A DNA stretch of 64,000 nucleotides from Auanema rhodensis (taxonomy: Eukaryota > Animalia > Nematoda): positions 6,386,001 to 6,450,000 of the forward strand of contig OZ059897.1 in NCBI GenBank assembly GCA_964057225.1, read 5' to 3'. This document shows, one piece after another, positions 3,370 through 22,521 of this stretch. The notes beneath the pieces are model-generated. The model was not told where the DNA came from. It did not search any database and was given only the letters and a program-made list of their open reading frames with translations. Numbering within the stretch: position 1 is the stretch's first letter; each line of letters opens with the position of its first letter. Position numbers and translations under genes: made by a program.

Positions 3370-6300
3370 ATGAGAAATGGCAGTGTTAGTGGGTCTGAAA
3401 CAGCATTGGATCGTAGAAATCATAATGGTTATTGTGAAGCTACAACATCGAAAGCAAATGAAACGAATGAAATGAAATCTATTCTCAGGTATCTATGTAA
3501 ATCAGTATTTAATTTCATAATTTAAACTTTATATTGCTAATCCCATGAAACGAACAATATTAAACTGATATTTTTACTAATACTAAACTAGAAGCGTATT
3601 CGATGCCAGTGGAGAAATAGAGCTGAAGCATGCGAATGAGCCCAATCCCTAGCTGATATTTTATCAACATGAGGTGTAACCTTGGCAACAAGCCACGCCT
3701 TACTTGAAGGCGAAGAAGTGTTTAAGTTAATGTAATCAGTTTCATAGGTGAATTATGAACCATGAGCATCGGCGTAAATGAAAGTAGTGCTCTAAGTTTG
3801 GAAAGCGTGATTCGCTTTAAGATTTAACTTTGACTAGTTGATACTTGAAACATGTATACATATCGAGAGGTAGAGAAATTTTGTTTAGTACAAGATCTTA
3901 TACTGCATATTTTATTAAAACATCGATTTTTGAATGAATCCATCCAATAATTATAGAATAGATAACACTCATTAACATAAAGTGTAAGCAAGAATTCAGT
4001 TGAGTAGATTTACTCTTTGAAAATGGTTTTTACTACGAATTTCTTTGTTTTTGCTGTAATCTAGTAAGTTATAAGATTCAATATTTAGAAATATACAAGT
4101 AGTAATACCATATCATACAGTACGGGATTATTATCATCTATTAATATTAATATTGATTATTTGATATATAAGTATATAAATGTATTCAAAAGCCGTTCAA
4201 AATCTGAGAACCAAAATAAAAAAGATTGAATATAGGAAAAAGTTATTTAAATTTTTTAAAATTAGTATTTATAGCTAGTTTTATTATTCTACTTTCAGTA
4301 GTAAAAGCAATTGTCAACTTCGTGCTCCTCGCTTAGCAACAGCCTTAGAAACGATATGGAAAATTAAGATGAATAGTATGGCTTCCGAAAAAAAGGAAGA
4401 AGGGTATGACTTTTAAAAATTTTTCATTAGATATTTTAAACTAATTTCATTCTTTTATCACATACGTTAAGCCATGCTAGAAACTGATTGCTTAATATTA
4501 TATATGACCTGCTTGGATGCCAATATCTCAAAGTATATGGAAAGAGAACAGCAATATATTATTATTCTAAGAGGATGACCTTATTATTAGTCTTATATTA
4601 ATTAGAAGTTGAATTAATTTTGGGAAACTTCTATATATACTTATCCATAATTGTGTGACAATGAAAAGAGGTTGGCGATTTAAATATGAAAATAACAATA
4701 CTATTTTTGATTAGCATCACAAAAAACGTTAGAAGAAAACTTTATACGATAATAGTTTTGTAATATTTTTTCTTTAAAACGTCACAAACATTTTATAATG
4801 GTAAACTCACCCCCTCTTGTTTAGTATTCCAAAGATGAAGGCGAACCAAAGAAAACTCATAAATAGTGTTTGATTTAGTGGTTGTACATATAGGATTCTC
4901 GCTATTCAGTAGTTAATAGAGAGCATGTGCTGAAAGGAAAAAGGCAGGTGCCCTTTTCGTCCATAATCTTGTCCAGGTGAACCTAATTGGGACGTTACCC
5001 TTGCTTAACAGACTTTAGTTGGCCTGGTCATCCTTGTCGAGTTCAGAAAATTCGTTTTGGCACCCATAGCTTGAATCAGATTATTACGTTTTAAGTTATA
5101 AGCAGGCTATGTGTATTATTAGGAAAAATATTAATATAAAAAGAAAATTGTAGATTATCTTCATGTAGTATATGTTTATAGGACCTCTACGGACGATCAA
5201 GATGAGGAAATTTTAAAGAATTGTCTAGCTCGAAAAAAGATAAAAATAGAAGATAATATTGAAGAAGATTTGAAAGTTAAAGAACCTCTAACTACGGATG
5301 TAGATTTTAGTAAAAAGACTGTTCTAACCTCAAAAATTGGCGTAAAACTGAATGATGAGGTAATTTATTGAAGTTATTACCCGGTTTCTCTTCATTTCTT
5401 AAAAAAACACATTCACTTTCGTAAATTATATAGATTTTTTGAAATTATGAGAACTATATTTTTCTCGATTGTTAATTATTTTTTTCAGCCGGGGCCTTCT
5501 GGTGTTCGTACGTCAGCGCGATTATCTAAGAAAGGTAAGTGTCTTCATATTGATGGACTGCCTAACTAAGTATTTTCTAATGTCTCACAAGAAAGCCAAC
5601 CTCCCCAATTAGAGTTTTTGAAACGGGCCACATTATGACATTGGGCTTATGAAGCATCAAGTCTGCTACGGTAGATGGATAGATTAAGCTTAAAATGTAA
5701 AAAAAGGATGGGCAGGTAAAGGAGACAAATGGGTAAAATATGAAAGACTAAAATGATGTGCAGCTGAAAAGAGAGGCCAGATTTTCGGAGTTACTTTTGA
5801 AGATGAGGTAAAATGCAGAGAATCTAGAGAATTATGTTGAAAGAAAAAGTTGACGAGTCAGTAAAACAGACTTTTTTTCTCATAAATTGTGCTTCTCTTC
5901 ATGGGTTTTTGTATATGAAAATATCGAAAATTTATGCTAAACGTCTAAGCCGGGAGGCGGATGTATCTATTTAGTTTCGGCTTAGAAAACCATTTTGGTG
6001 TAACCTTTTGGGTGGTCCACTCTAACCGAGTAGAGGTTAGATTTTCAAAAAGTTGCTGTTCATTCTAAATTTACATTTCAATTTCTGAATTCTATAATAC
6101 CTAACTTTTTGATATTTATCTATGTTATTATAACTGCAATATGGATATATACGGCATGTTTTATTCTGGAAATTATCAACGTGCTCCAGGTTAGTAAGCG
6201 TTAAGTTGGTTGTCTTCTTCTCTAACAAGCTTTTCGAAATTACTCATTTAGTAATTCATTATATATTTCTTTATTTGTTTTCTTTAATATTATATTCAAT

Positions 6301-9300
6301 TATTCAAAATTTTAAAATATCTATTTCAATATTAGTTAATTATATATTGACTAATGCGCTTATAACGTTTATTTGAAAGCATTATTTAATGAAGTGAAAG
6401 TATGCCCCTCGAGTTACAGTATCTCTTGTGCTTAAATTCCATTCTCAATGTCGTTTACGGTTCTTTATTTCCTTTTACCAATAAGAAGCTTGACATGACA
6501 AGAACAGTTGCTTTCTCAATTTCAGCTGAATTTCCTCTTTAAATATATCCGGTAACAGCAATTGCATTCATGTTGTAGGCTTGACCTTTCAGTATTTTTT
6601 CTTGATCCCAGCTTAAAAAGCCATACGATCGTCCAAACAAATCCACGCATTAATATAAAATGATGAAAATCTTCCTAATCTTTCCTTTTAACCATATGAA
6701 GAACCTCAACAATATTATTCTCCAATCTTCAGCTTGATCACCTTGAGATGACTATTCCGACCCTAACCCTGCTATGTCCAATCTGAGCCGATAGCTAGAG
6801 CTGCCATCAGCTGGCGCAGCTGCTGGTCGAACGGCCAGCCTACCTTGTCTCATGTTCATGTGACATTTCGTGCTCCTACTATATCTATATTAGTGGTTGT
6901 AACCTCTTTTGTAAACTAAAGGAATTGCATCGAACTATCTATACTGAAACCATGTCGTCAAGCAGTTTGAGCTTATTATTACCCCTATCATCTGCTTCGC
7001 TACATCCACCATCCTTAATATCTTTGGGTAAGTTGTTCTGTAATAATCGAGAATTCTTCAACATTCCCTCAAAGTGATGTAGAGATTTTTCAACTTTTCT
7101 ACATTTTGAATTTTCTTTTAATTCTTTTGATTAATTTTGAAGTTAAGCTTAGCATGATAATTGGCTCTTTCGCCAAATCAACAAGTTTAATTGATTTATT
7201 TCTAGATTAGTGATCTCTAACATTTTTGATTCGCATGAATGAGCGTTGTTGAGCTGAAAGTAAAAGAGTCTTCGTCTCAGTCAGTACCATGCTCTGAAAC
7301 GTTGAGCTAATAGTGCACTTTGAATGGTCAGTCGTATAGTATGAAAATGCAAAGGCTGGTCAGGTCTTTAGTTCAGTTCGAATTGTTACATGTGCTACTA
7401 AATGTATGTACATAGATGGTGTGTGGGCTGTTTCTTAACTAAATGTCGGACGAGTTTCAAAGACAATGCCTTGTACGTGCATAATACATGGAGCTGGAAA
7501 GCTCAGGTAAATGGTGGTCGAAAATCTTCGCATAAAGACTGAAGGAATAGGGAATTGGCACGTGTAGAGGGAGCGAGGGAGTGAGTGAAAGATGAGTCAG
7601 CAGAATAGCTTCTTCATACGTAGCAAACGATTTTCGTTAAAAGGCCTTTACCTTATGCGCACAAAAGAAGGTGAAGGGTTTGCTTCAAACTATAGAACAA
7701 TGAAGAGAGGGACAAGAAAGAGAAGAAGAAGAGAGAAGGCGGAAGAATATCATTCTATGAGTTTCTGAAGCTGCAATAGAAGCATAACTGAAACCGTGGC
7801 ATTCTATGCTCATGATCTTGATCAGCATTTTTACTTCCAACTAGTGCCCACGTGTTAAACCGTCTGTTCTCCTCTATCCTCATCAGGAATCAACAACTAC
7901 TTACTTTTCCATATTGCTTATCATGATCAATAGACAGAAGTGTTAGAGCACCTGTTGTAGAGAACCGACACGTTTTCATAATTGAATACCTTGATATACC
8001 ATATTAGGAAATGTTCAATGTATTTGACTATAGTAGCGCCATGCGCCAAGCTTCGGTGGCACGGCATCATATGTGTGAGTTTGTCTTTTATCTTCTTCAG
8101 CTGATGAGTCGAGTGTTAGATTGCTATTTTCCCCTCAACTTCCTATCAATGCAGACAAAATTTGTCGTATGTCATAATTATCTATAATCATAACCAAAGC
8201 ACTGCAATGCTTATTGATCAACAACTAGCTTTTTTTATTCGTTTTCAAGTTCAGTATAGGGATATGCTTATATGAATCTACTCTCCTGGAAATAGGATTC
8301 ATTCACTTCATATATTCTTAATATGTGCTGTTAACTCTTTCCTATCTTCTGCAAGAAGCGTCTTAATTTCAATGCATTTGTAGAAATCTCTCTCGGAACA
8401 ATCTGAGAGAGATTGAAGTGCTCAATTTTGTCGTCAATCCATGAATGCCATTCTTGTCGATCCCCATACTAGCCTCGTGCCTGAAGGCAGTTTTATCAAT
8501 GATAATCAGGCTCCAATGTTAACGCTGGCTGATATTGAGCGAGAGCTGCGGCGCCAGCCAGGCCATTTCATCTACCTCCATTTCTCTATATCTCTATATC
8601 TCTATATCTCTATCTTTACATGTATTTTATCTTTCACACTTTCTTTTTCTCTCATGCATGCCAATATCTAATACTATACCACACGGCATATTCAATACTG
8701 GCATCTAGAAGCTTGAGGCAACCATCACAATCCCACTTGTTTTTAATCAATACAGTTTATCGTTTCTAAGATCATATGTTTTTGAATTTTTCATTTCCTT
8801 GAGACAAATTAGAAATTAAAATGCAAGAAAGATAACGTAGAAACCGTTTTTCACCTTGTCTCGATATCAGTTTTCCAAGTCAGCAAGCTTTAGCTCATCT
8901 TGAAGATGTTTCAAGTCGCAGCAGTTTTCAGTGGCTGCGATTTGAAACTTTTGTCTTTTCCCTCCATGTTATCTTTCAATCTTTTCCCGATAACATAAGC
9001 TACTTCATATTAGTAAAGAAATCTGACATATACTCTATTTATGGGCACATAAGCTAATAACACTATACATTCTCTCAATCTTAATCGAAATGTATACATC
9101 TATATATATTGAAACCCATATGATCTACGGCTTCATGTGAATTTTCAGTTTTCATATTTTATTCTTAGAATTGGTTTTCGAGAAATACTTACTTAGTATA
9201 TTATAAAAAAATAAAATATTTGAAGCAATTAATTCAATTATGTGTCTATTATATCTTCTGTATCTATATTTTGCCGTATGTACATGCCCTTTTTTTATAA

Positions 9301-12300
9301 AATAATGCTTGATCGAAGCTAATCCACTTCTTTCGTATGTATTTCATATCAACCTCAATCTCAGCTTCTTTTCATGTATGAAAATAATATTTTGTAGTAC
9401 CTTGCCTTGATAATAATTCAAACAGGAAGAATATACATATATTAGATGAAAAGACAATTTCATTGTGATGGATTATGAAATGTAGAAGTTACTGAATGAT
9501 ATGATTGGGTTGAGGGGGGAGGGATGGGGTGATATATAGCAGCATATCATTAGCTTAGCTCTAGCTGGTGATAGTTGAAATCATTTTGTTTTCAACGACA
9601 GTGAGTGTTCAACCAAATTTTCTTTTTTTTCTGTCCCATAAAGTATGATTTCGAATATTCGCATCATATGACAATGGGTAAGCCTCAAAGATACAAGTAA
9701 ATATATTTTCAAACACTTTTCAACTTACTGGTACTTTTTTTTTTCAAAAAACAAATGCTAATTATGAAATGAAAGTGTTAATATTCTTGTTTCAATGTTG
9801 AAATATCTATATTTCTTTTTATATAAATTAGCTTTCGGGTCAGGTCGGTCTTAATGATCATACATGTTTTCTATAGTGACACCTGCTGCTATTTAGCTGT
9901 ATCTGCTTAAAAGGTTAACCGCCTATATAAGTAGAAAATAGCTCGAAGATAGAGAGAAAGAGATAATACGAATCTGGCTGAGCCCTCTGTTGTTATTGCT
10001 ACGGTTTTAATTGTTAATAAAAAGTCTATTGAGGACGGCAACAAGACATTGGGCGGCAGCTTTATATTTAGTAAATTTACCTGATGCTTCAGCTCGTTAT
10101 AGAAAAAAGAGAAGATAAAAGAATGTAAAAAATAATTTGCTGTCAAGCAAGAAAACAAACAACGATCAGTTTGCAAAAATATAAAATAACTTTCTTCGGT
10201 AGAACAACTTCTGATAAAAAGTAATTATATGACAAAGTTATTGAAAGATTTTACATTCTTATTATAAAATTTTTATTTTTTTTAATCAAAAATTATATTA
10301 ACTTTTGTTTTTGTTTTATGTTTAGTTGAATAGCTTTTATCATATTTGCATTACTGCGTTCGTCCTGGCTAACGCTTTGGTGAGTAATTAACATACTCAC
10401 GCATCACGTGAACTCATTACGCTGTCTATCATTTTGACCTGATTAAATAGCGTGAAACGGTTGTGATATCTCTACATTTTTTCAATTTTTCTGTGAAATT
10501 TAAAACTGAAATTTGAAAAAAAAACCACAATTTTAAACAATTGAACATTGCTGGTACAAACAAAATTACCTGTTAGAAAGAATAATTATAATTTGGTTCG
10601 TAGGGAATATTTATCGAATGAAAAATTTTCATTTGAGTATTCGTTTTCGTTATCTACTAGTAATTTCGAGAGAAAAAGAATAAAAGATTTTTGCCGGAAA
10701 CAACGATAATTTTCGTTTTGCAATATTATTCGAAAGCATTGTCAGCAGCTAGTTAGCTAGTTTACATAACTAATCTCATATTGACTCCCTTGATTAGGGC
10801 ATTAGTTTTTTGAAAAGCCTGTTGAAATTTACTATCAATATATTTTTAATATTCAAATAAATAATTAAGTTTCAGGTAGCGATCCTTCGGAATTACTAGA
10901 TACGTCAGGATCCGGTTATACGAACGGAGTTCACACCCAGTACGTTGGAGATTTTGGTAATATGGAATACTCACTGCAACAACAGTCTCATTTAACCAAC
11001 AAGTTAGTTCTATTTAAGGACCAGACGAGGTAATACATGTGGGTATGGTTATTGGTGTTAGGATATGGTGCATAAAGAATCAAAATAGCAGCATTTGAAA
11101 ATCTCTTAATCTTGATAAATTCCGATAACATTCATGATATAGAGAAGTAGAAGAAGTTTTAAGCAATAAACACGTATATTTTGGATTATCGTGATGTTGC
11201 AGTCATGAGAATTTGGTTGCCTAGTTGCCATTGCCACAAGTTAGATATTGCCAAGCATGGAAGCAGATATATCCGAATATCTTTGCCATCGCTAAACGAT
11301 ATTAGGTATAAAAGCTCGCAGCACAATATCTTTAAGTTTCGAAACTCAAAAAGAGTTGGTTAGCTGAATGTACAGTAGAATGATTGACCTATTTCGAAAG
11401 TGCATCTCATTTCGTGTGATGGCTACTGAATGTTTAATCATTTTACAATTTTTTCTAGGGTTTCTCCAACAATTGAATATGATGGAGGTAAAAAGGTAAA
11501 AGCGTTCATTATATAGAAAATGAAGATAGATAACATGTGTGAGTGAATCGAAAATTGAAACTATTCAACTTAGAATTTTCAATTGACACGGATTACATTG
11601 TGTTTTAAGTGAAGTCGAACAACGAGCTAAGCGAATAACGACTTGTCTCCTTGGTGACATGAAAAATTTCATGGCCAGTTAAAGAAAACATATAAATTTG
11701 AAGCTAATGAAATAATGAACAGTCGCGAGTTAAAACATTCGAAATATTAGAACAATGTTAGAGTATTGCGCTACGGAAAGAAGACGGAATATTCGTGGAA
11801 TAGGTGGCTGAAAAGTTCGCAACAAGCTGACAATGTGCGCGTTCAGCACCGACGGCATTCAGATGTGAATTTTAACTCCTCTGCCTGGTTGTCATCGATG
11901 CCGTGACTAGTGTTTGAGCGTCCATGTATGGTTGATAACGGAGACGGTTGCCTGGTGAAGGGGGAGGCCGGACCGGGGGTCGCCTAGGCGATTCACGAGT
12001 TCCGCTCTCCCTCTCTCCCTTCTTTTCCTAACTAGTTGAAGAGAGGAGAGAAAGAAAGATGAAGAGAGATTCAAGATACACGTATATGCACAAGCCTTAT
12101 TTGGTATCCCAGAGACTGAGAGAGGGAGGGAAAAATGAGAGCAAAATACGTAAGAGAGAGTAAAAGGAGAGCAAGCAGGAGCAAGATGGAGTCAAGGCCG
12201 TCTCCATAGCTCCCGTACGTCTTAGTCAACCAACACTCACTTTGCTTCAACCTCCTTCAGACGAACTACACCCTAAGTTTTGCTAGATCAGTATATTCCC

Positions 12301-15300
12301 TATATTTGCAGCCATTCGAGCGTCGTTTTCATTTTTCTTCTATGTTATTTCATTTTTTTTTTGTATTTCTCGCCATTCATTTTTCATGCCACATTTTCTG
12401 TATTTGTATTCTTCAAGATCAGCGAAGAATTTACTACGGTATGCAACAAGTTACAAAAGCTTTGATGTAATGCCGAATAGTAGAGAGTCCTAATTATGGA
12501 TATAGAAGTAAGTAATCGGATGATTAGTAATCGTTTCCTCATATTTTAAATTCTATCGGAGCTTAATAACTTGGTAGTAGCGCAAGTTCCAATTATTAGA
12601 TAATCAGGCTCGAACGACTTCTCAATCAGATAGCTCTCAGATATGCAACGTGATCACAAAACTTTCTTCAACTTCTACAACATCTGCATAATATAACAAA
12701 ATATAATTTGTTGTTATATTATCAAATGATATATAATTTAAATAAATTATAATAAATTATATTTATTAAAACATAAAATAAAATACAATTTTACTATTTA
12801 CTATGTGTATATTCTTCTGTAAATAGTAGATATGAAAGTCTCTTTAGGCAAATCACAAAAAAGTATTTCAAACCATGGATAACCGCAGTTCAATATTTCT
12901 GGTTACCACGGTTTCGAAACAGCTACTTGTATATCTTTGAATTATCCTCAAGTTTGGCTGTATCTGGAATGATATTTCTATTCTTTAAAGAAATTGTACC
13001 CTCAATTACATGGTTGGGAATGTGATAACGCCTTTCTGAAACCATTTTCTTCAGTCCATTAGGAACCCTTCTTCTCTCTATATTTTTCTTTGAAATAGCT
13101 TCATTCTATTGACAGTCTTGATTGCTTCTAGAAATACTTCTGGAATATTCTCCCTCAGCGCTTGATAGAGAAACACCCGAAGTTTTTAACTTTGTCTGTC
13201 TGACTCTGGTATTTTGTAGCACATAGCGGCTAGGCATTTGGTAGGCCAGAGAGTTCCCCACTCACTTTTTCATATTTCCTCTGCAACTACACCTTTCTCT
13301 AACTTCCCGCTTTTCTGCTCACTTGTCTATCTCCCTTTCTACATTGTACTCTCTTCTCATTCTCTTTCATGGGCTGGAAAGGTTTGTCGAGACAGCTCTC
13401 AGCCTGCTTTAGGCCAGAAAACCCTTCTAGTTCAGCCTCTCGGACCTAATTACCGTATACCGGAAGGCGGGCAGACGCCAGGTGCTAGCCGCTGGTCAGC
13501 AGTCTTTCGAACCTTACTCACCCTGGTGCACTCTATAGACACCTCCCCCCACGTTCGTGCCATAATATTCTGTTCTTCGATTGAGGTAACCTAAGGTCTG
13601 TTCTTACCAACCTCAACGAAGAGTCAATCAGAGCTGAGTTAAGTCCGTTGCCTGGCTTCTGCTTCCAATTGAGCTACAGAATTTTGACTACGCCGAGGGA
13701 TACCACATATTCCATCTGCATCAGTCACTATCCACATATCATTGAACCAACTAACTAGGGTTCGAACTTTTATTACTGCTCAGTGGAACTTTTGCCCACC
13801 ATCTATACACCGCACCTATCAACATGTATTCACCTACTCTTTATCCACCGTCATCTGACTTAGATGATTGTTGGAGTGGCAAAGCTGACGATATGCTTCT
13901 TTTCAGTAATACAACATATGTCTATGCAGGTGATACGCCATCTTACCAATACTACCAAGTAAGTTTTTTTTTCTTTCAAAAGTTCACTTAGCTAGTTACA
14001 ATGCGAAACTTGTTGTTTACTATTTCACTCTCTCTTAGACTATATTTTCACATAATATTTGGGTAAAAATCTTACTTTTTCGAGTCTAAAAGGACATGCG
14101 AAGTTATTCTAAGAGTTTATTCAACATTCTTGTTTTCATGATAGCAAAAAACCTAGTTAATATGCTTTACTTAATCATTGTTTCAATAAGATTTTCGTTG
14201 AGCATAGATTGATCTCGTAAAATAATTATTTTCCTGAAAATTTATTAAAACTTCTTTTAATTGTTTTGTCCTCTAGCTACGTTTCCTATAAAACAAAGTT
14301 AAACTGAATAATTAAAGCTCCGTTTTAAATGTTTTCATAAATCATAATTTATTTGAAAAATTTTAAAATAATCTTCGATTTAAAATATCTTTGATTTGAT
14401 ATTTTTTCTAAAAAGTTGAGAAAAGATTCCATGCTTTTCGCATATATATACAAACCTAATGATAGCCACAATCTGGCCCCATCACATGATGATTTCGATA
14501 TAATATTTAGAATTGAAGAAATAATTATTTTAAATCGTTTTTCAGTATTCGGGAAATGTGCACTCGCCTAACCAACAGTATATCGTTAGTGGAAATCATT
14601 CTCCAGGATCAGCTGATGACGATCACAACACCGGCATTCAGCATGCTACCAGGGCTTCACCAGCCACAGTGAGTCATTCATTTTTTTCGGCAGTTGCATA
14701 ATGGTGCAGAGATCTTGAAACTTAAGTTCGGAAGTTCGCAATGTGAAGGTTTGGCTCTTTCTAGCACAGCCTCTTCCTAATTGATTCGAACTTAAATAAT
14801 GATGTAGAAAACGCTGTGTAGGCACAAGCCTAATTTTCCTCATCGATAGATAGAGTTCTACGTCTTAGGTCACAACATATTTTAATAATTGCTGTCGAGA
14901 ACACGCGTTCTCAGCTTCCGGTTGTCGGCCACAAATTATTTTTCTTTTTGGTTCTGCAACATTGCTGACACTAAGCTTTTGATTCTTTCATTGACAAAAT
15001 GAGTTTGAAAGAGTTTGTATGTGAGAGAAAAAGCTTTAACCTAGTGTTACTATCAGTAAATAACATTAGTTTGACACAAGAGTTCATTTCATAGATCTAT
15101 ATACTACTCTCAGTTAAATACATTCTAACTGAATTATTGAGCGACGGATATGGAATAAATGGATTGAAATGATACTTAATGAAAGGGAGTACGAGCACGG
15201 GGTGAGAAACATGACGAATGGTGGGTGGCTTAACAGATAATTTTCTACCTAGCATATATAGATAAGATGATTATATGTATATTGAGCTAGTGAAAGCTAT

Positions 15301-17889
15301 AATTGTCAGCTTTACCTCTCATTTTGAACATTTATCTACTTGACATGACCAATTATACTCGAATGGTGTATGTACAAGGCAATGGTTGGATCGGAGAGCA
15401 ATATGTGTCTCCCCCTTCCTATTAGGCAATGACAAGGATAATTCTAAGTTATTATCGTTTTTGATTATTCAATATATCCATCTATATATCTATATATCTA
15501 TAATAAAAATATATTTTAGAACATCATTATGGTCTGAAATCAATAATTATATTAGAATATCGTAGATGAAAATGAAATTATCTGCAACCAAAAAATATAT
15601 AAATACATATCTATATAAAGAAAAAGAGAGAGGGAGAGGGAGAGAGAGAGAGGGAGAAGGAGAAGCTTTGATATTCATTGTGCAAATATTCTGTTTTTAC
15701 AGCTATACGCTTTTTTCGAATATGAATAGGAACTACATCATGGCAAAGCTTAGATTTATGACAAAAAAGAAATCTTTATTTTGAGTTGCTGATTCTTTTG
15801 TTTATCCAAATCAATTTCAATAGATCACATAAGAATGTGAGAAAATCTGTGTGTTGTTTCAAACAACAAGTTATAGAAAAAGAATATTCTCCCTCTCTCT
15901 CTCTCTCTCTCTCTGTCTTTTTCTTTTATTTCTGAAAAAAAATATTTTTGGTTGAATACAAATTACGAAGTCTGATATAGATATATCAACTGTTTTTCTC
16001 AGATATAAATACATTTTTCTTGTAATTCTGTTCATATATCACCTTTTGCTTTTACCCCCCCCCCCCCTTTCCTCTCAATTCCAATGAAAGACACACATAA
16101 TAGAAAAAAAAGAAAAAACGAAGGAAAGATTCTTAAATTTTATATTTCTCATATTAGAAATATTTGATCTCTGTTCATGAAAGCAGAATTTAAAATCTAA
16201 TTAGTGAGACATATACGAGTTTAATATAAGTTGAGTGATCATTCTTAAATGATTATACGCGATCTCATAAATCAGTCTAATTCGCTTATTACGTCAATGC
16301 TTGATATAAATATTTATCTCTCACACACTATTCGTATTGTTAGCTTGGAAGCTGGACAGCTGAATTTAATAAGTAAGCTGTAATTCAGATCTATATCCGA
16401 CCTAGAACAGGATTATAATTGCTGTGCGGGTGTGTTCCAATCATAAAGGTCATTGTGCTGTAGCTACCGTGAGCCTTATTTGGTCATTCTGATTCTCGTG
16501 GCAGTCATAAGGCTAGGATTAAAATCAGGCTTCACTGTTTTCTTAAATTGGATGAAGCTGAACGGTGAAATTGCCCAGAAAGATATAGAAGAGAAGTAGG
16601 CGGTAGAAGGTATGAAAGAAGAAAATAGTAATATAGGGGAGGTATGAACATTCTAAGAAGTGTTTGGGGACTTAATGTTTTCATGAAACACCTCCAAATA
16701 TTGTGAAGTATTTCTGTCTGAGCTTGCACCTGGTTACCTTCATCTTGTACATGGTTTCTCGTGCCGGAAAATCTATACAGAAGCCTCTGGAAAAATCATT
16801 TAGAAGGCTAATGGCATATGATTCAAAGCAATTCCGAAAAGCTTAAGCCTAATCCCTACCCTTATCTTGCAACAACATCCAATGCTTGCTTGTCTCATTT
16901 TGTCAAAGCATGAATTCATATTTACGAAGAATAATATAAGAATATTCTGACTGTGCTTTCATATGTCATTAACTTCTTCATACATCATATTACGTTTAAT
17001 TCGATGTCAAAAAGATAAAAGCATCTGTAAACTCTCAAAAGAGCAGCAGCTTGAGTAATAAGCTATTCCATCAAAACAGTTAAGTCTTCTTGAAAGAGCG
17101 GCTGCTGAGGAAAATTAGAGCGAGGTAATTAGGTCAAGCTTAGAAACATATATATGAGGTAGATAGCGGCAATATAAGACCAATTAACTTATGATGATGA
17201 GAGGACTACTCACATATACCCGTCAATCTCCATGGATTGTTCGACTGCCACGGTTTTCTTTCCTATTTTCCTGAACAGCCGTCTGGGGCCACATTATTAA
17301 CGAACCGACGGACAATTGTTACTAGAATTGCTCAGAACCTGCATCAAGGCTATTTAGCACAATAATGACAATATGTCACGCAATTTACGTGAGAATAAGA
17401 GATTTCACGTGTTCACGTTCACTCATTAGCATGATGTTAGCTGAAAGCGGTTGCATTTCTATCATTCATATCAACAAATTTCAAATAAATTCTGTACGCC
17501 GAAAGAATTTGTTGACGCTGTTTTTTATTTATCAGGATAGATCAAATCTATAAGATTGATTTCTATAAGATGTGTTACCTTGTTGAGAAATAGAAAGAGG
17601 GGAACATACAGAAAGAGAGAGAGAGATATATATTAAAACCTTTCTTCCATTTTCTCATGTAAAATTGATTTGAGTAGCTCTGATTTTCTACGAAGACTGA
17701 TTGTAGACATTGGGGGAAAACAATCTTCAAGCTCACTGAATAGAGACATAACTAGGAACACCAGCTGAAACTAATTACACTCACATGGTGGTCCCTCTCA
17801 TTGTCCTGTTATCTCATGTATGCTCTATTTCTCTACTTCACTAAATCAGCTCTCTTATTCTTTTATATACCTTTTTACATGCATCTCTG

Positions 17890-17951
<62 letters not shown>

Positions 17952-20900
17952 CTTGCTTAAGTCTTTCGATTTCCGGACTTCATTAGAGAAGTTATCTGTT
18001 TACGGTCACCCAATATGGCTTTATTCCATGTTAAATGATAGACATTTAACTAATATTTTCCAATAAAAGCTTAAACAAGAGCTAACTACCGAAGTGTAGA
18101 ATCTGAGAAAGGAAGTGAATTGACTAACATACATCATCAAGCAGAGCATACAGGAAAACAACAGCCGTTTCTAACAGTATAACGACGATTTTTACCTTAT
18201 GAAAAGAGTAGTGACACTGAATAAATGGTCATTAGTCAATTCTATTCTCGACATTATTCATTGTAGATTGAAGACGAGCAACAGGTGTTCGCCAATGGGC
18301 CAAATTAGGTGGCCGGTATGACCATCTTCGAATTTCTTATTTTCCAATCAGATACATCTTTTCCATATTTAAGGGATATTAAGAAAAAACAGTATTTCAT
18401 GTGTTTTGATGAATTATTTCAGCTTGAATAGAATTGAAGAAGGGATGTACAGTAGTAATATACTGTCTGTATTAATGGAGGGAAAGGAAAGCAAAAAAGA
18501 AACAGAGAGTGAGAGAGAGAGAGAGAGAGGGGGGGGGGAATGGTTGAGAAATTAATAATGGTTTTAACAACAAGCTTGCTAATTTGTATTTAAGGTAATC
18601 ATCGAGGGAAATGAATTGAGAGGGATTATTTTGAACAAGAAAATAGGGAATATTTTGAAGGAAAATAGAGCCAAAAGGTGACAGATGTTTTTTTAGAAGC
18701 AAAGCCGCAGCTAGTTTATAGATTAGACGAGATTATGTTTTAATATCATAGGTTGAGGGAAAGATTCCTAAATGGAAAAAGAACAAGGTGAATAAAGGTC
18801 ACCTGCTCCGATTATGTTGGAAGAAAGAGATATAATAATCCGAAGACATTTGATTTCTCTCTCTCTCTCTCTCTCTCCCTGTATGTCTCTATGTCACTAG
18901 TATTCATAGCAAAACCAACAATATCGTACTCATTCGTTTCATGAAATAGTTGAATTACTGTTGAAAACTCATATTCATCGGTATTTCAATCGATCTACAA
19001 CATGGGCTAACTGACTGCTCTGTCTTGCTGTCTTGCATCCGGTAGACAAAGTAAGAACCATTGAATCATAAGAATTTTTGACGAGAAATAGACTAACTTG
19101 AACATAAGTATGGATCAAACGTCTAAGAGCTAGAGCAAAAGAGTTAGAACGAAAAGTATATAGCGCAGTTGTTACCTTAGCAACCTAGAGTACCTAGTAC
19201 TCCCCGGACCTTCAAAATTTGTGTGTTTAGCCTCGAAGTTTAAGCCATTTTGAGAGAAAACTTTTTCCTATTCTTTGATATTCTTTGGAAAGAATATAGA
19301 AAAAGTTTCAAAAATTAATTTGTATAATTCAATGACCATATTCCTATCTATATCTATGCTTCCGCCACGAAAATTGCATCATTTTCAAGTATAGACATTC
19401 GAAATTTCCCTTTTTTTCCCTGTAAAATTGCTATTTCTCTAATTGTTTCTAAAAATGATGTTGGATTCTTTATTGCGAATTGACTCATCACCAGAAACTC
19501 GTCTACATGTAAGGATTGAATTAAGCAATATTCTCATAACAACCTTATAAAATATATGAAAAAAATTTAAATTAATTATAATTTATGTAGTTATTTATAT
19601 AAAATATTTTAAATTTATTGAAATTCTTTTAATTTCAGATACAGTGGTTACTGGATAACTATGAACCATCTGATGGGACGTCTTTACCTAGATGCACCTT
19701 ATATGACCATTATAAAAAGTAAAATTTCATGAATATTTCTTTAAAAAATGAAAAATATTACTCATATTCTTAAATATTATTTTATGGAAAACTTTATTCA
19801 AAAGGATTAGTGAACTTCTGTCAATGTTTTAACGTTGCCATGGCAACCAGTTCTGAGTATTTTGTCCTTCGGACCTATAGTTAAACACTCAAATATTTAT
19901 AAGTTATGCTAAGCAAGAAATAAATTAAAGAACGAAAAATAGAATTTCAGTCTTTTTTCTCTTTTTAAAAAAAAAATGTTCGAAAGAAAATTATATATTT
20001 CGAAACTTTAGGCATTGCATGGAATATAAGTTAGATCCTGTTAATGCTGCTTCATTTGGTAAACTGATTCGGAATGTTTTTCAAAATTTACGAACAAGAC
20101 GTTTGGGAACTCGAGGCAACTCCAAATATCATTATTATGGAATAAGGTTGTTTGATTCTTTATAATCTTTATTCTAAATTTCAATGTAATTTCCAGAATA
20201 AAGCCAACTTCAATATTGAATCGTGAGAGAATTCATGATTATTCATCAGAAGAAACTTGTGCTCCACCAAGACAGTAAGATTATTCATTATTTGATATCA
20301 TTATCTATTCAATTAAGACATTCTCGAGCAGCCAAGAGAGCAGCCCCACCATCTCAGACCTCTGTTAGTCCTCACTCAACCAGCAGGTTTGTAAACTTCA
20401 ATCTTTGGAATTGAATAGAAATAATTTTTAGCTTCAGCCCTGTTCCTAATCTTCCAAACCCTTTGATCTCAAATACTGATACAAACGTTATAGTTGGTAA
20501 GTTTGTTATTAAATTTCTTTAAAGTTCAAAAATAAATGCAAGAAAGAAATGTTTAAACTATCAATATTTAGCTTCTGAACTCGATAAACAATCCTTGGGT
20601 GATGGAGAATTGCCAAAAGTTGAGCTTCACTTCCGAGTGGGCTTGGAAGACGAATTAAGAAAGTTTGGTTTAGAACTGTCGCATGTGTGCAAGTTTGTGG
20701 AAATCTACAAACTTAATTGTGCGGTAAGAAGATTTTAATATAAAAAATATAAATTATTATTTATAAAATATTCAGGATGTGATATACTGTGTCAAAAACA
20801 TTGCTTTTGATAACGTTGGTCATTTATGGGCTTCCTTCTGGCAACCAGATGATTTTCTAGAGGATGACGAGTATGTTTTTCTTGTTTTCTCTTCTTTTCC

Positions 20901-21967
20901 CTCATTTGGTTTTTTTTAGCAAAACCACCCGGCTAACTCAACAGCATCTCTTCTCTATGTGCACAATTCCATTGATTCAATCTTTCATCGTTAGAATGGA
21001 TTTGGCTTTGTATCAGGTTATTGTGGATATTCTCGTTCCGGATGTTTTACTCTCTGAAATGACTCGTAAGCCTATTCCATATATTGGCATAATTTAATTT
21101 TTCTTTTAATCTTCAGCTCTTCTCATTCAAGCCTGTCGAAGTTTTGCAAAGAATGCAGAGGGATTTTTGAGAAAAGCCATGCAGGGTGCTCCTGACGTGA
21201 TTCAGAAAAAGAAAATTCAAGCAATTAAATATATGGCGCAGGGATTAAGAAGGTTGATAAAGCCATATCTCTATTCTCATATTTATTCATTTTTAGATAT
21301 ACATCGTTAAATCATCTCTCTCAAGCTGCTAAGGCTGTCTTACACAAGCCTGATCAAGTTGCTGCAATGTATACTGATTATATTAAGTATGATTATTTGT
21401 ATTTCTTTTCCTCAAAATATATTTAACTTCAGAGTTGACATTTCTCAAGTTCAAGAACAAGCTGGCTGGGTTTGTGGATGTGATCCTGTCACAATCAAAC
21501 AGATTCATAATGCTTTCAAAGATAATCTCCAGAAAGTTGCTTCTATGGCAGAGTGGGCTGAATGGATGGAAAGTATAGTTGATCAGGTATTTTCAATTAG
21601 ATTTTCGAATAATTCATTTATATTTCTTATTTAGAATGTGCAAATTCTATCAAATTATCATGGAAAACCAATCCAAGATGTGTCAAAAGTTGCCAAAAGA
21701 TTCTTATTACATTGGAGTTTATATACGTAAGTTTATGCTTTTGAAGCAGTTTATTCAAATTTTTATATGTTTCAGCTCAATGTTAATTCGTGATTTGACG
21801 TTACGATCAGCTAATTCTTTCGGCTCTTTTCATCTTATTCGATTATTATCAGATGAATATATGCTCTATCTCATTGAATCTAAATTATCAAAAGCGATGG
21901 ATAGGCCAACAATAGCAGTTATGACATTGGTAAGTTACAACTTGAATCTCTACTCTTTTTCAAATTA

Positions 21968-22033
<66 letters not shown>

Positions 22034-22521
22034 TTCAATTCCTTAATAACCGCCATTTCAGCCAACAGATTATCCAATCTTTGATGATCTTATCATTCAC
22101 GGACCGTCATCGCCTGTTCTACAAGTGCCTGCTCCTCTCCCGCCTATTTCCTTAAACTCTTTGTATATGCCACATGATTCTCTCTTATATGGTGATAAGG
22201 TGGGATTTTCAGTAAGTCAATTAAACTCTAACATGTGTCGTGAAATTTCTATGAATATGAATATATAAGGAAATATTGTAAATCGTATTGTTTTCAGTTC
22301 ATAATTGGAAGCGACGAGCATATTAATAGTCCTGTTGTCGTAACAGATGGTGGAGGTTTGTACATTATTTTCTTTTTCTTATAAAACTTATATAAATTAG
22401 AATTTTTTCATTTTTTAACATGAAATATATCATTTTCTTGATTCCTACAACAATCCTCTAAATAATATTTTATTTTTCAGAATTACTATCTAGCTTACAA
22501 CCATCTGGCGAGCTTTTATAA
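3370..22521 (+). CDS. daf-19: RFX transcription factor (long isoform, more than 20 exons)
   Basis: N-terminal exons [23 protein letters not shown] (3370-3488) and IWKIKMNSM (4299-4403) match the C. elegans DAF-19 N-terminus. The RFX DNA-binding domain reads TRASPAT|[27 protein letters not shown]|[45 protein letters not shown] (exons near 14546, 19639 and 20012). The dimerization region contains [22 protein letters not shown] and [28 protein letters not shown]. Stop TAA at 22519-22521. Confidence 0.96.
3676..3689 (+). promoter_or_regulatory. X-box (RFX site) GTAACCTTGGCAAC in daf-19 intron 1
   Basis: Fits the nematode X-box consensus RTHNYYWTRRNRAC at every position. Confidence 0.55.
11645..11658 (+). 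promoter_or_regulatory. X-box GTCTCCTTGGTGAC in a daf-19 intron
   Basis: Fits RTHNYYWTRRNRAC. A further X-box-like near-palindrome, GTCGCCTAGGCGAT, lies at 11979-11992. Confidence 0.5.
17892..17945. repeat. (CT)n microsatellite in daf-19 intron
   Basis: Directly visible dinucleotide run. Confidence 0.95.
19171..19184 (+). promoter_or_regulatory. X-box GTTACCTTAGCAAC about 270 bp upstream of a candidate internal daf-19 start
   Basis: Full match to RTHNYYWTRRNRAC. Confidence 0.6.
19455..19508 (+). CDS. daf-19: Candidate alternative first coding exon of a short daf-19 isoform
   Basis: aaaaATG start, 18 codons [18 protein letters not shown], strong GTAAGG donor in phase 0, in frame with the DNA-binding-domain exon at 19639. 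SSPET mirrors ASPAT at the end of the upstream exon. Confidence 0.55.
19834..19847. promoter_or_regulatory. Perfect palindromic X-box GTTGCCATGGCAAC in the intron splitting the RFX DNA-binding domain
   Basis: Exact 14-bp optimal RFX palindrome in otherwise very AT-rich intron sequence. Confidence 0.75.
21972..22025. repeat. (CT)n microsatellite in daf-19 intron
   Basis: Directly visible dinucleotide run. Confidence 0.95.

Follow-up and report, generated by a model that had tools for sequence, protein, structure and literature searches.

The window analyzed here is a 64-kb stretch (C5:6386001-6450000; G+C content 32%) of the 181-Mb genome of the nematode Auanema rhodensis. It contains daf-19, the gene encoding DAF-19, an RFX transcription factor, together with three X-boxes, the motif that RFX factors recognize. 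Sequence comparison gives good support to the predicted binding of DAF-19 to these three conserved sites. It is also rather probable that DAF-19 feeds back on its own transcription through its three X-boxes, mainly via a downstream promoter that resembles that of the short isoform DAF-19M. Self-regulation is strongly suggested because the sites are enriched against the genome background and all three are conserved in orthologous loci. Whether the effect is positive or negative, and which isoform acts on which other, is what we infer. Cilia have RFX factors as their master switch, and the control of the level and isoform choice of these factors themselves is poorly known. Conserved self-sites, one of them at the candidate promoter of a specialized short isoform, offer a testable model for how ciliated neurons may lock in RFX expression.

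The strict X-box consensus was defined as GTNRCCNNRGYAAC with spacers of 0-3 allowed, and the reversed pattern served as a control. Three sites, at 3676, 19171, and 19834, fit the imperfect inverted repeat GTNRCC(N0-3)RGYAAC. The first lies 187 nt past the donor of an upstream coding exon (exon A), between this exon and the next (exon B); the ATG at 8011 follows 4.3 kb downstream. The second is found within the 4970-nt intron 14669-19638; the M-type exon, an alternative first coding exon, has its ATG 284 bp downstream of this site. The third sits inside an intron of 293 nt that divides the coding sequence of the DNA-binding domain (DBD). The original prediction had listed four X-boxes in daf-19 introns, the three above and one at 11645. 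All four sequences are present where they were placed; the one at 11645 fails the consensus. Two-mismatch 14-mers of its type are scattered through the window (14 in all), and the match is probably due to chance. The site at 19834 is, as claimed, a perfect palindrome. Two further near-matches, at 11979 and 12902, are not X-boxes since they carry two mismatches in the critical right half. The impression that no equally good match exists elsewhere proved correct, as no other sequence in the 64 kb fits the strict consensus with any spacer from 0 to 3. The intronic position of the sites at 19171 and 19834 is established by spliced RNA contigs and that of 11645 by homology-mapped exons, whereas 3676 lies between two conserved coding exons that appear to belong to daf-19.

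The density of strict sites at the locus exceeds the background in every comparison made. Dinucleotide-preserving shuffles of the window gave an expectation of 0.06 strict sites against the 3 observed, a count reached in 0 of 100 shuffles. In the 181-Mb genome, the strict consensus has 62 + 56 matches on the two strands (131 + 125 for the reversed control). From these counts, ~0.01 strict sites are expected in the 16.2-kb span in which 3 were observed (Poisson P ~2e-7). With a looser core allowing one mismatch, 1027 sites were counted genome-wide (917 for the control), and 0.09 would be expected in the span against the same 3 (P ~1e-4). No other interval with three sites occurs among the 100 matches listed. 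The consensus search thus bears out the denser occurrence that a scan against the genome background had been proposed to check. A repeat origin of the sites was ruled out, as the 300-bp surroundings of all four are single copy in the genome. Genome-wide, the strict consensus is less than half as common as its reversed control (118 vs. 256). Among the matches listed, all are located at about 4-19 Mb of large contigs and none at contig ends. Such a pattern might arise if the motif is avoided, or if the arms are masked or left out.

Conservation was assessed mainly with the daf-19 locus of Auanema sp. JU1783 (labelled L002), whose annotated protein of 681 aa (labelled P0150) is the nearest among the DAF-19 relatives retrieved. 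Order is maintained between this locus and the window, similarity being confined to islands amid diverged non-coding DNA, and most of the intron sequence is unalignable. The site at 3676 has its counterpart in an X-box at L002:6743 within a conserved block. The 14-mer at 19171 is identical at L002:19214, in a conserved block of ~90 bp, 192 bp upstream of the JU1783 M exon. The palindrome at 19834 corresponds to L002:19700 in the JU1783 DBD intron, with one base changed. No motif was found at the place in JU1783 collinear with 11645. The JU1783 locus therefore keeps 3 of the 3 strong sites and not the fourth one predicted.

More distant relatives show the same arrangement in part. In the strongylids Ancylostoma duodenale and Angiostrongylus cantonensis, an X-box lies 296 and 381 bp, respectively, upstream of the M exon. 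Both also have an X-box in the DBD intron (L005:6705 and L011:10583) with perfect half-sites and a spacer of 3 nt instead of 2, so that the position is kept and the spacer changed. Diploscapter pachys has the X-box of the DBD intron, and none was found upstream of its M exon. Overall, 11 orthologous loci (294 kb) contained 13 consensus matches with spacers 0-3 and 2 matches for the reversed control. The preservation of positions with varying sequence and spacer points to selection on RFX binding and not on a fixed RNA or DNA string. X-boxes in daf-19 are consequently not peculiar to this species but common to Auanema JU1783, strongylids, and Diploscapter. The layout is thus present in parasitic strongylids, whereas in the model worm it appears to have changed.

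The identity of the gene, assumed in the original prediction, is borne out by its domains and its relatives. A six-frame search of the genome revealed a single RFX DBD, at 20007-20150 on the plus strand (PF02257, 78 bits), and the BCD domain (PF25340), which mediates dimerization, was matched over four exon stretches downstream of it (20915-21893). Homology searches were run with single exons or database proteins, and exons were joined solely to verify that the frame stays open. One exon was searched without a profile, and its best match was then used in a word search; this retrieved nematode DAF-19 proteins, including BMA-DAF-19 and CRE-DAF-19. The gene is the daf-19 orthologue on the plus strand and the sole RFX gene of the genome. 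In the second DBD exon, 36 of 44 residues are the same as in human RFX1 in its DNA complex (1DP7), and the basic wing segment is unchanged.

Evidence on splicing came from assembled RNA contigs of four public runs, of which the portion read extends from the 14639-14668 end through 22355. The contigs are 100% identical to the window and contain 14 GT..AG joints. The contig sequence before 19639 matches 14639-14668 exactly, and GTGAGT follows in the genome, which places a junction at 14668->19639. Only the isoform skipping the M exon is seen in these contigs. There seem to be three start regions of daf-19, as in C. elegans, at 3370, 8011, and 19455. DAF-19 from any of the three starts would carry complete DNA-binding and dimerization domains.

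The downstream start is that of the M-type exon. This exon is homologous to the annotated DAF-19 N-termini of Ancylostoma duodenale, Haemonchus contortus, and Angiostrongylus cantonensis. Set against JU1783, 6 of its codons are identical, 8 differ synonymously, and 3 are replacements, and these counts indicate a coding exon under purifying selection. Its layout is as in C. elegans DAF-19M, the shortest transcript, which is made from the promoter lying furthest downstream and has a short first exon of its own spliced to the DBD exons (PMC3685541; bioRxiv 10.1101/2021.02.03.429678). Judged from its sequence, the exon marks a candidate internal promoter. The idea that DAF-19 controls internal promoters of its own gene could thus apply to one site, the X-box at 19171, and not to the others, which are not located at such a promoter. 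The C. elegans DAF-19M promoter was reported to depend on UNC-86 and CFI-1 sites, with no mention of an X-box (PMC3685541; bioRxiv 10.1101/2021.02.03.429678). In contrast, Auanema and the strongylids have a canonical X-box 190-380 bp upstream of the M exon.

In this genome, motif positions make the classical RFX ciliary regulon recognizable. For instance, a strict X-box (G000:C3:14424033) precedes the BBS5 gene (C3:14424130) by 97 bp. The IFT46 gene, on the minus strand of C6, has one (G000:C6:15437620) ~650 bp upstream of the first detected domain exon. Given these X-boxes and the near-identity of the recognition part of the DBD to that of human RFX1, it is reasonable to infer that DAF-19 recognizes such sites here. 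The 14-mer consensus of ciliary X-box promoters (bbs, ift, xbx) is common with the daf-19 sites. The ciliary sites, however, lie within a few hundred bp of the starts of effector genes, whereas two of the three daf-19 sites are deep inside the transcription unit of the regulator itself.

In the proposed mechanism, DAF-19 protein made from any start would bind the three X-boxes: the one in what would be the upstream form's first intron, the one preceding the downstream start, and the one in the intron splitting the DBD. Bound DAF-19 would then feed back on daf-19 transcription. Most likely, the DAF-19 already present in ciliated neurons would activate or maintain the DAF-19M-type promoter through the two X-boxes that flank the M exon and first DBD exon, which would serve the short isoform as promoter and intronic enhancer.

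Sites of this kind at RFX genes are not new in principle, and the circuit is of a familiar type. Yeast Crt1 reportedly regulates itself. As proposed for DAF-19 here, human RFX1 and yeast Crt1 are RFX factors acting on their own genes through X-boxes; theirs are repressive promoter sites tied to replication stress, whereas the Auanema sites are intronic, at a candidate internal promoter, and in a ciliogenic RFX gene. Among the human RFX genes (RFX1-8), self-regulation is reported to be uncommon, and RFX1 autorepression is the exception (PMC5838959). In C. elegans, likewise a nematode with a sole RFX gene that carries its own recognition motif, daf-19 (F33H1.1a) stands first among the "known X-box motifs" (Chen et al. 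2006, Additional data file 1; PMC1794439). The listed 14-mer is identical in intron 2 of C. briggsae (L004:9745). The array of the same study showed daf-19 mRNA to be ~3-fold lower in daf-19 mutants (Chen et al. 2006; PMC1794439). In one study, none of the 446 published ChIP-seq data sets interrogated, covering 259 transcription factors, was of DAF-19, and FKH-8 was seen to bind the daf-19 locus at five places (PMC10393296). Neither a description nor a functional test of daf-19 self-regulation was found in the literature searched.

Several observations weigh against self-regulation through these sites. The X-box pattern was picked only after the sites were known. In Mesorhabditis, Steinernema, and Dirofilaria, the daf-19 loci showed no strict X-box. 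Pristionchus mayeri has a single X-box, with a 1-nt spacer, 438 bp upstream of the first DBD exon, and the X-boxes of Caenorhabditis daf-19 are at other positions. The arrangement is thus not universal. The M-type exon is missing from the assembled RNA contigs of the four runs, an absence that by itself proves nothing. Exons A and B, between which the first X-box lies, are, to judge from their sequence, only putative parts of a long daf-19 isoform. Finally, the 3-fold drop in C. elegans may be due to nonsense-mediated decay of the mutant mRNA.

The Caenorhabditis sites deserve a closer description. An X-box is found ~75 bp upstream of exon 1 of the long isoform in C. briggsae (L004:6684) and C. 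brenneri (L010:5928). A second one lies ~3.1 kb downstream in intron 2 (L004:9745 and L010:9023), at near-equal spacing in the two species. The DBD intron of Caenorhabditis measures 51-86 nt and is without an X-box, which sets these species apart from Auanema. We tentatively consider, as possible yet doubtful, an ancestral cascade in which a pan-ciliary DAF-19 switched on the DAF-19M-type isoform via the bracketing X-box pair, and Caenorhabditis later lost the pair and was rewired. The ancestor would be the one common to strongylids, Auanema-like rhabditids, and Diploscapter. In Caenorhabditis, the DBD intron would have shrunk to ~50-90 nt and the M promoter would have been rewired to cell-type selectors. 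If true, such a cascade and its loss in Caenorhabditis would explain why it has not been described in the model species.

Other explanations of the sites can be weighed against the same evidence. DAF-19 might repress its own gene via the X-boxes, which would buffer its dosage instead of maintaining or switching isoforms. Autorepression of RFX1 is indeed the only RFX autoregulation cited in the literature found (PMC5838959), and a site within a transcribed region, e.g., the DBD intron, might impede transcription just as it might enhance it. This negative feedback is nevertheless unlikely. The X-boxes of nematode ciliary genes are activating, a distance of 190-380 bp upstream of a start exon is a promoter-like position, and C. 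elegans daf-19 mRNA goes down and not up in daf-19 mutants, an effect confounded by mRNA decay. The X-boxes could also be real RFX targets that serve other genes, namely a divergent minus-strand neighbor ~1 kb from 3676 or an unannotated nested transcript. A minus-strand gene in JU1783 does end at L002:5810, collinear with ~2640 of the window, and conserved non-coding blocks exist in the introns. Still, JU1783 has no annotated gene inside daf-19, the site at 3676 lies between two plus-strand coding exons, and two sites bracket the M exon and first DBD exon, a placement seen across five species (in Diploscapter, the DBD-intron site only). We regard service to other genes as more improbable still than repression.

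Very little credit is given to the last alternative, i.e., that the sites are chance palindromes or are conserved for a cause other than RFX binding, such as another factor, RNA structure, or splicing. The pattern was chosen post hoc, one of the four sites originally proposed (11645) behaves like chance, and if the looser core is used, chance could produce such a cluster about once somewhere in a genome. However, the cluster sits at the one RFX gene of the genome, all three strong sites are collinear in JU1783 despite mostly unalignable introns, and deeper relatives keep two of the positions though sequence and spacer differ. Self-regulation by DAF-19 thus stays the preferred explanation, and the features of the gene on which it draws are collected in Table 1.

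Table 1 Exons, X-boxes, and conserved blocks of the daf-19 locus (positions in the window)
Feature	Position	Strand	Evidence and remarks
Coding exon A	3370-3489	+	ATG 6 nt past TTTCAG acceptor; conserved donor
X-box 1	3676-3689	.	GTAACCTTGGCAAC; one mismatch to palindromic core
Coding exon B, in frame with exon A	4299-4404	+	Acceptor and donor conserved
Coding exon with middle ATG, protein start annotated in JU1783	8011-8076	+	77% aa identity to P0150 residues 1-22
Coding exon	10881-11000	+	77.5% identity to P0150 residues 24-62
Weak X-box-like 14-mer	11645-11658	.	GTCTCCTTGGTGAC; two mismatches to core
Conserved non-coding intron block	11874-12268	.	88% identity to JU1783; ~65-nt core about 98%
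Coding exon, approximate bounds	13905-13964	+	P0150 homology
Coding exon, splices to 19639	14546-14668	+	RNA contigs; 89% aa identity to P0150
Conserved block, candidate enhancer	18199-18294 (96 bp)	.	94% identity to JU1783; ~1.2 kb upstream of M-type exon
X-box 2	19171-19184	.	GTTACCTTAGCAAC; in conserved block 19020-19187
DAF-19M-type alternative first coding exon	19455-19508	+	18 codons, donor GTAAGG, in frame with 19639
First RFX DBD exon	19639-19718	+	RNA contigs, homology
X-box 3	19834-19847	.	GTTGCCATGGCAAC; perfect palindrome
Second RFX DBD exon	20012-20144	+	PF02257, 78 bits; human RFX1 1DP7 match
Thirteen more exons including BCD domain	20195-22355	+	RNA contigs; gene goes on at 22481

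The comparison with JU1783 suggests the presence of daf-19 exons that are unannotated in Auanema. Exon A, compared to its counterpart, has 15 identical, 11 synonymous, and 9 amino acid-changing codons and a 3-nt indel; for exon B, the numbers are 24, 4, and 3. Substitutions in both are mostly at third codon positions. The counterparts (L002:6430-6539 and 7180-7274) lie upstream of the annotated start codon, and the public JU1783 annotation probably misses a long DAF-19 isoform, of which exon A is the probable first coding exon. When the N-terminal parts of long DAF-19 forms of other nematodes were searched, nothing matched upstream of 8011.

Among the conserved non-coding blocks, the one at 11874-12268 contains an ultra-conserved, perfect 12-nt palindrome, which is the near-match at 11979, and half an X-box near 12200. 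Possibly, this block serves another isoform as promoter or enhancer. Small RNAs were considered for the conserved blocks and rejected, as no Rfam family reached the threshold. The block at 18199-18294 contains an E-box and AT-rich motifs that we take to be POU/homeodomain-like. This is reminiscent of the daf-19m promoter of C. elegans, for which UNC-86/CFI-1 control has been reported. Moreover, the introns of daf-19 contain long GA/CT dinucleotide runs (17880-17960, 18480-18540, and 21970-22030), which cross-match one another and the JU1783 locus in BLAST.

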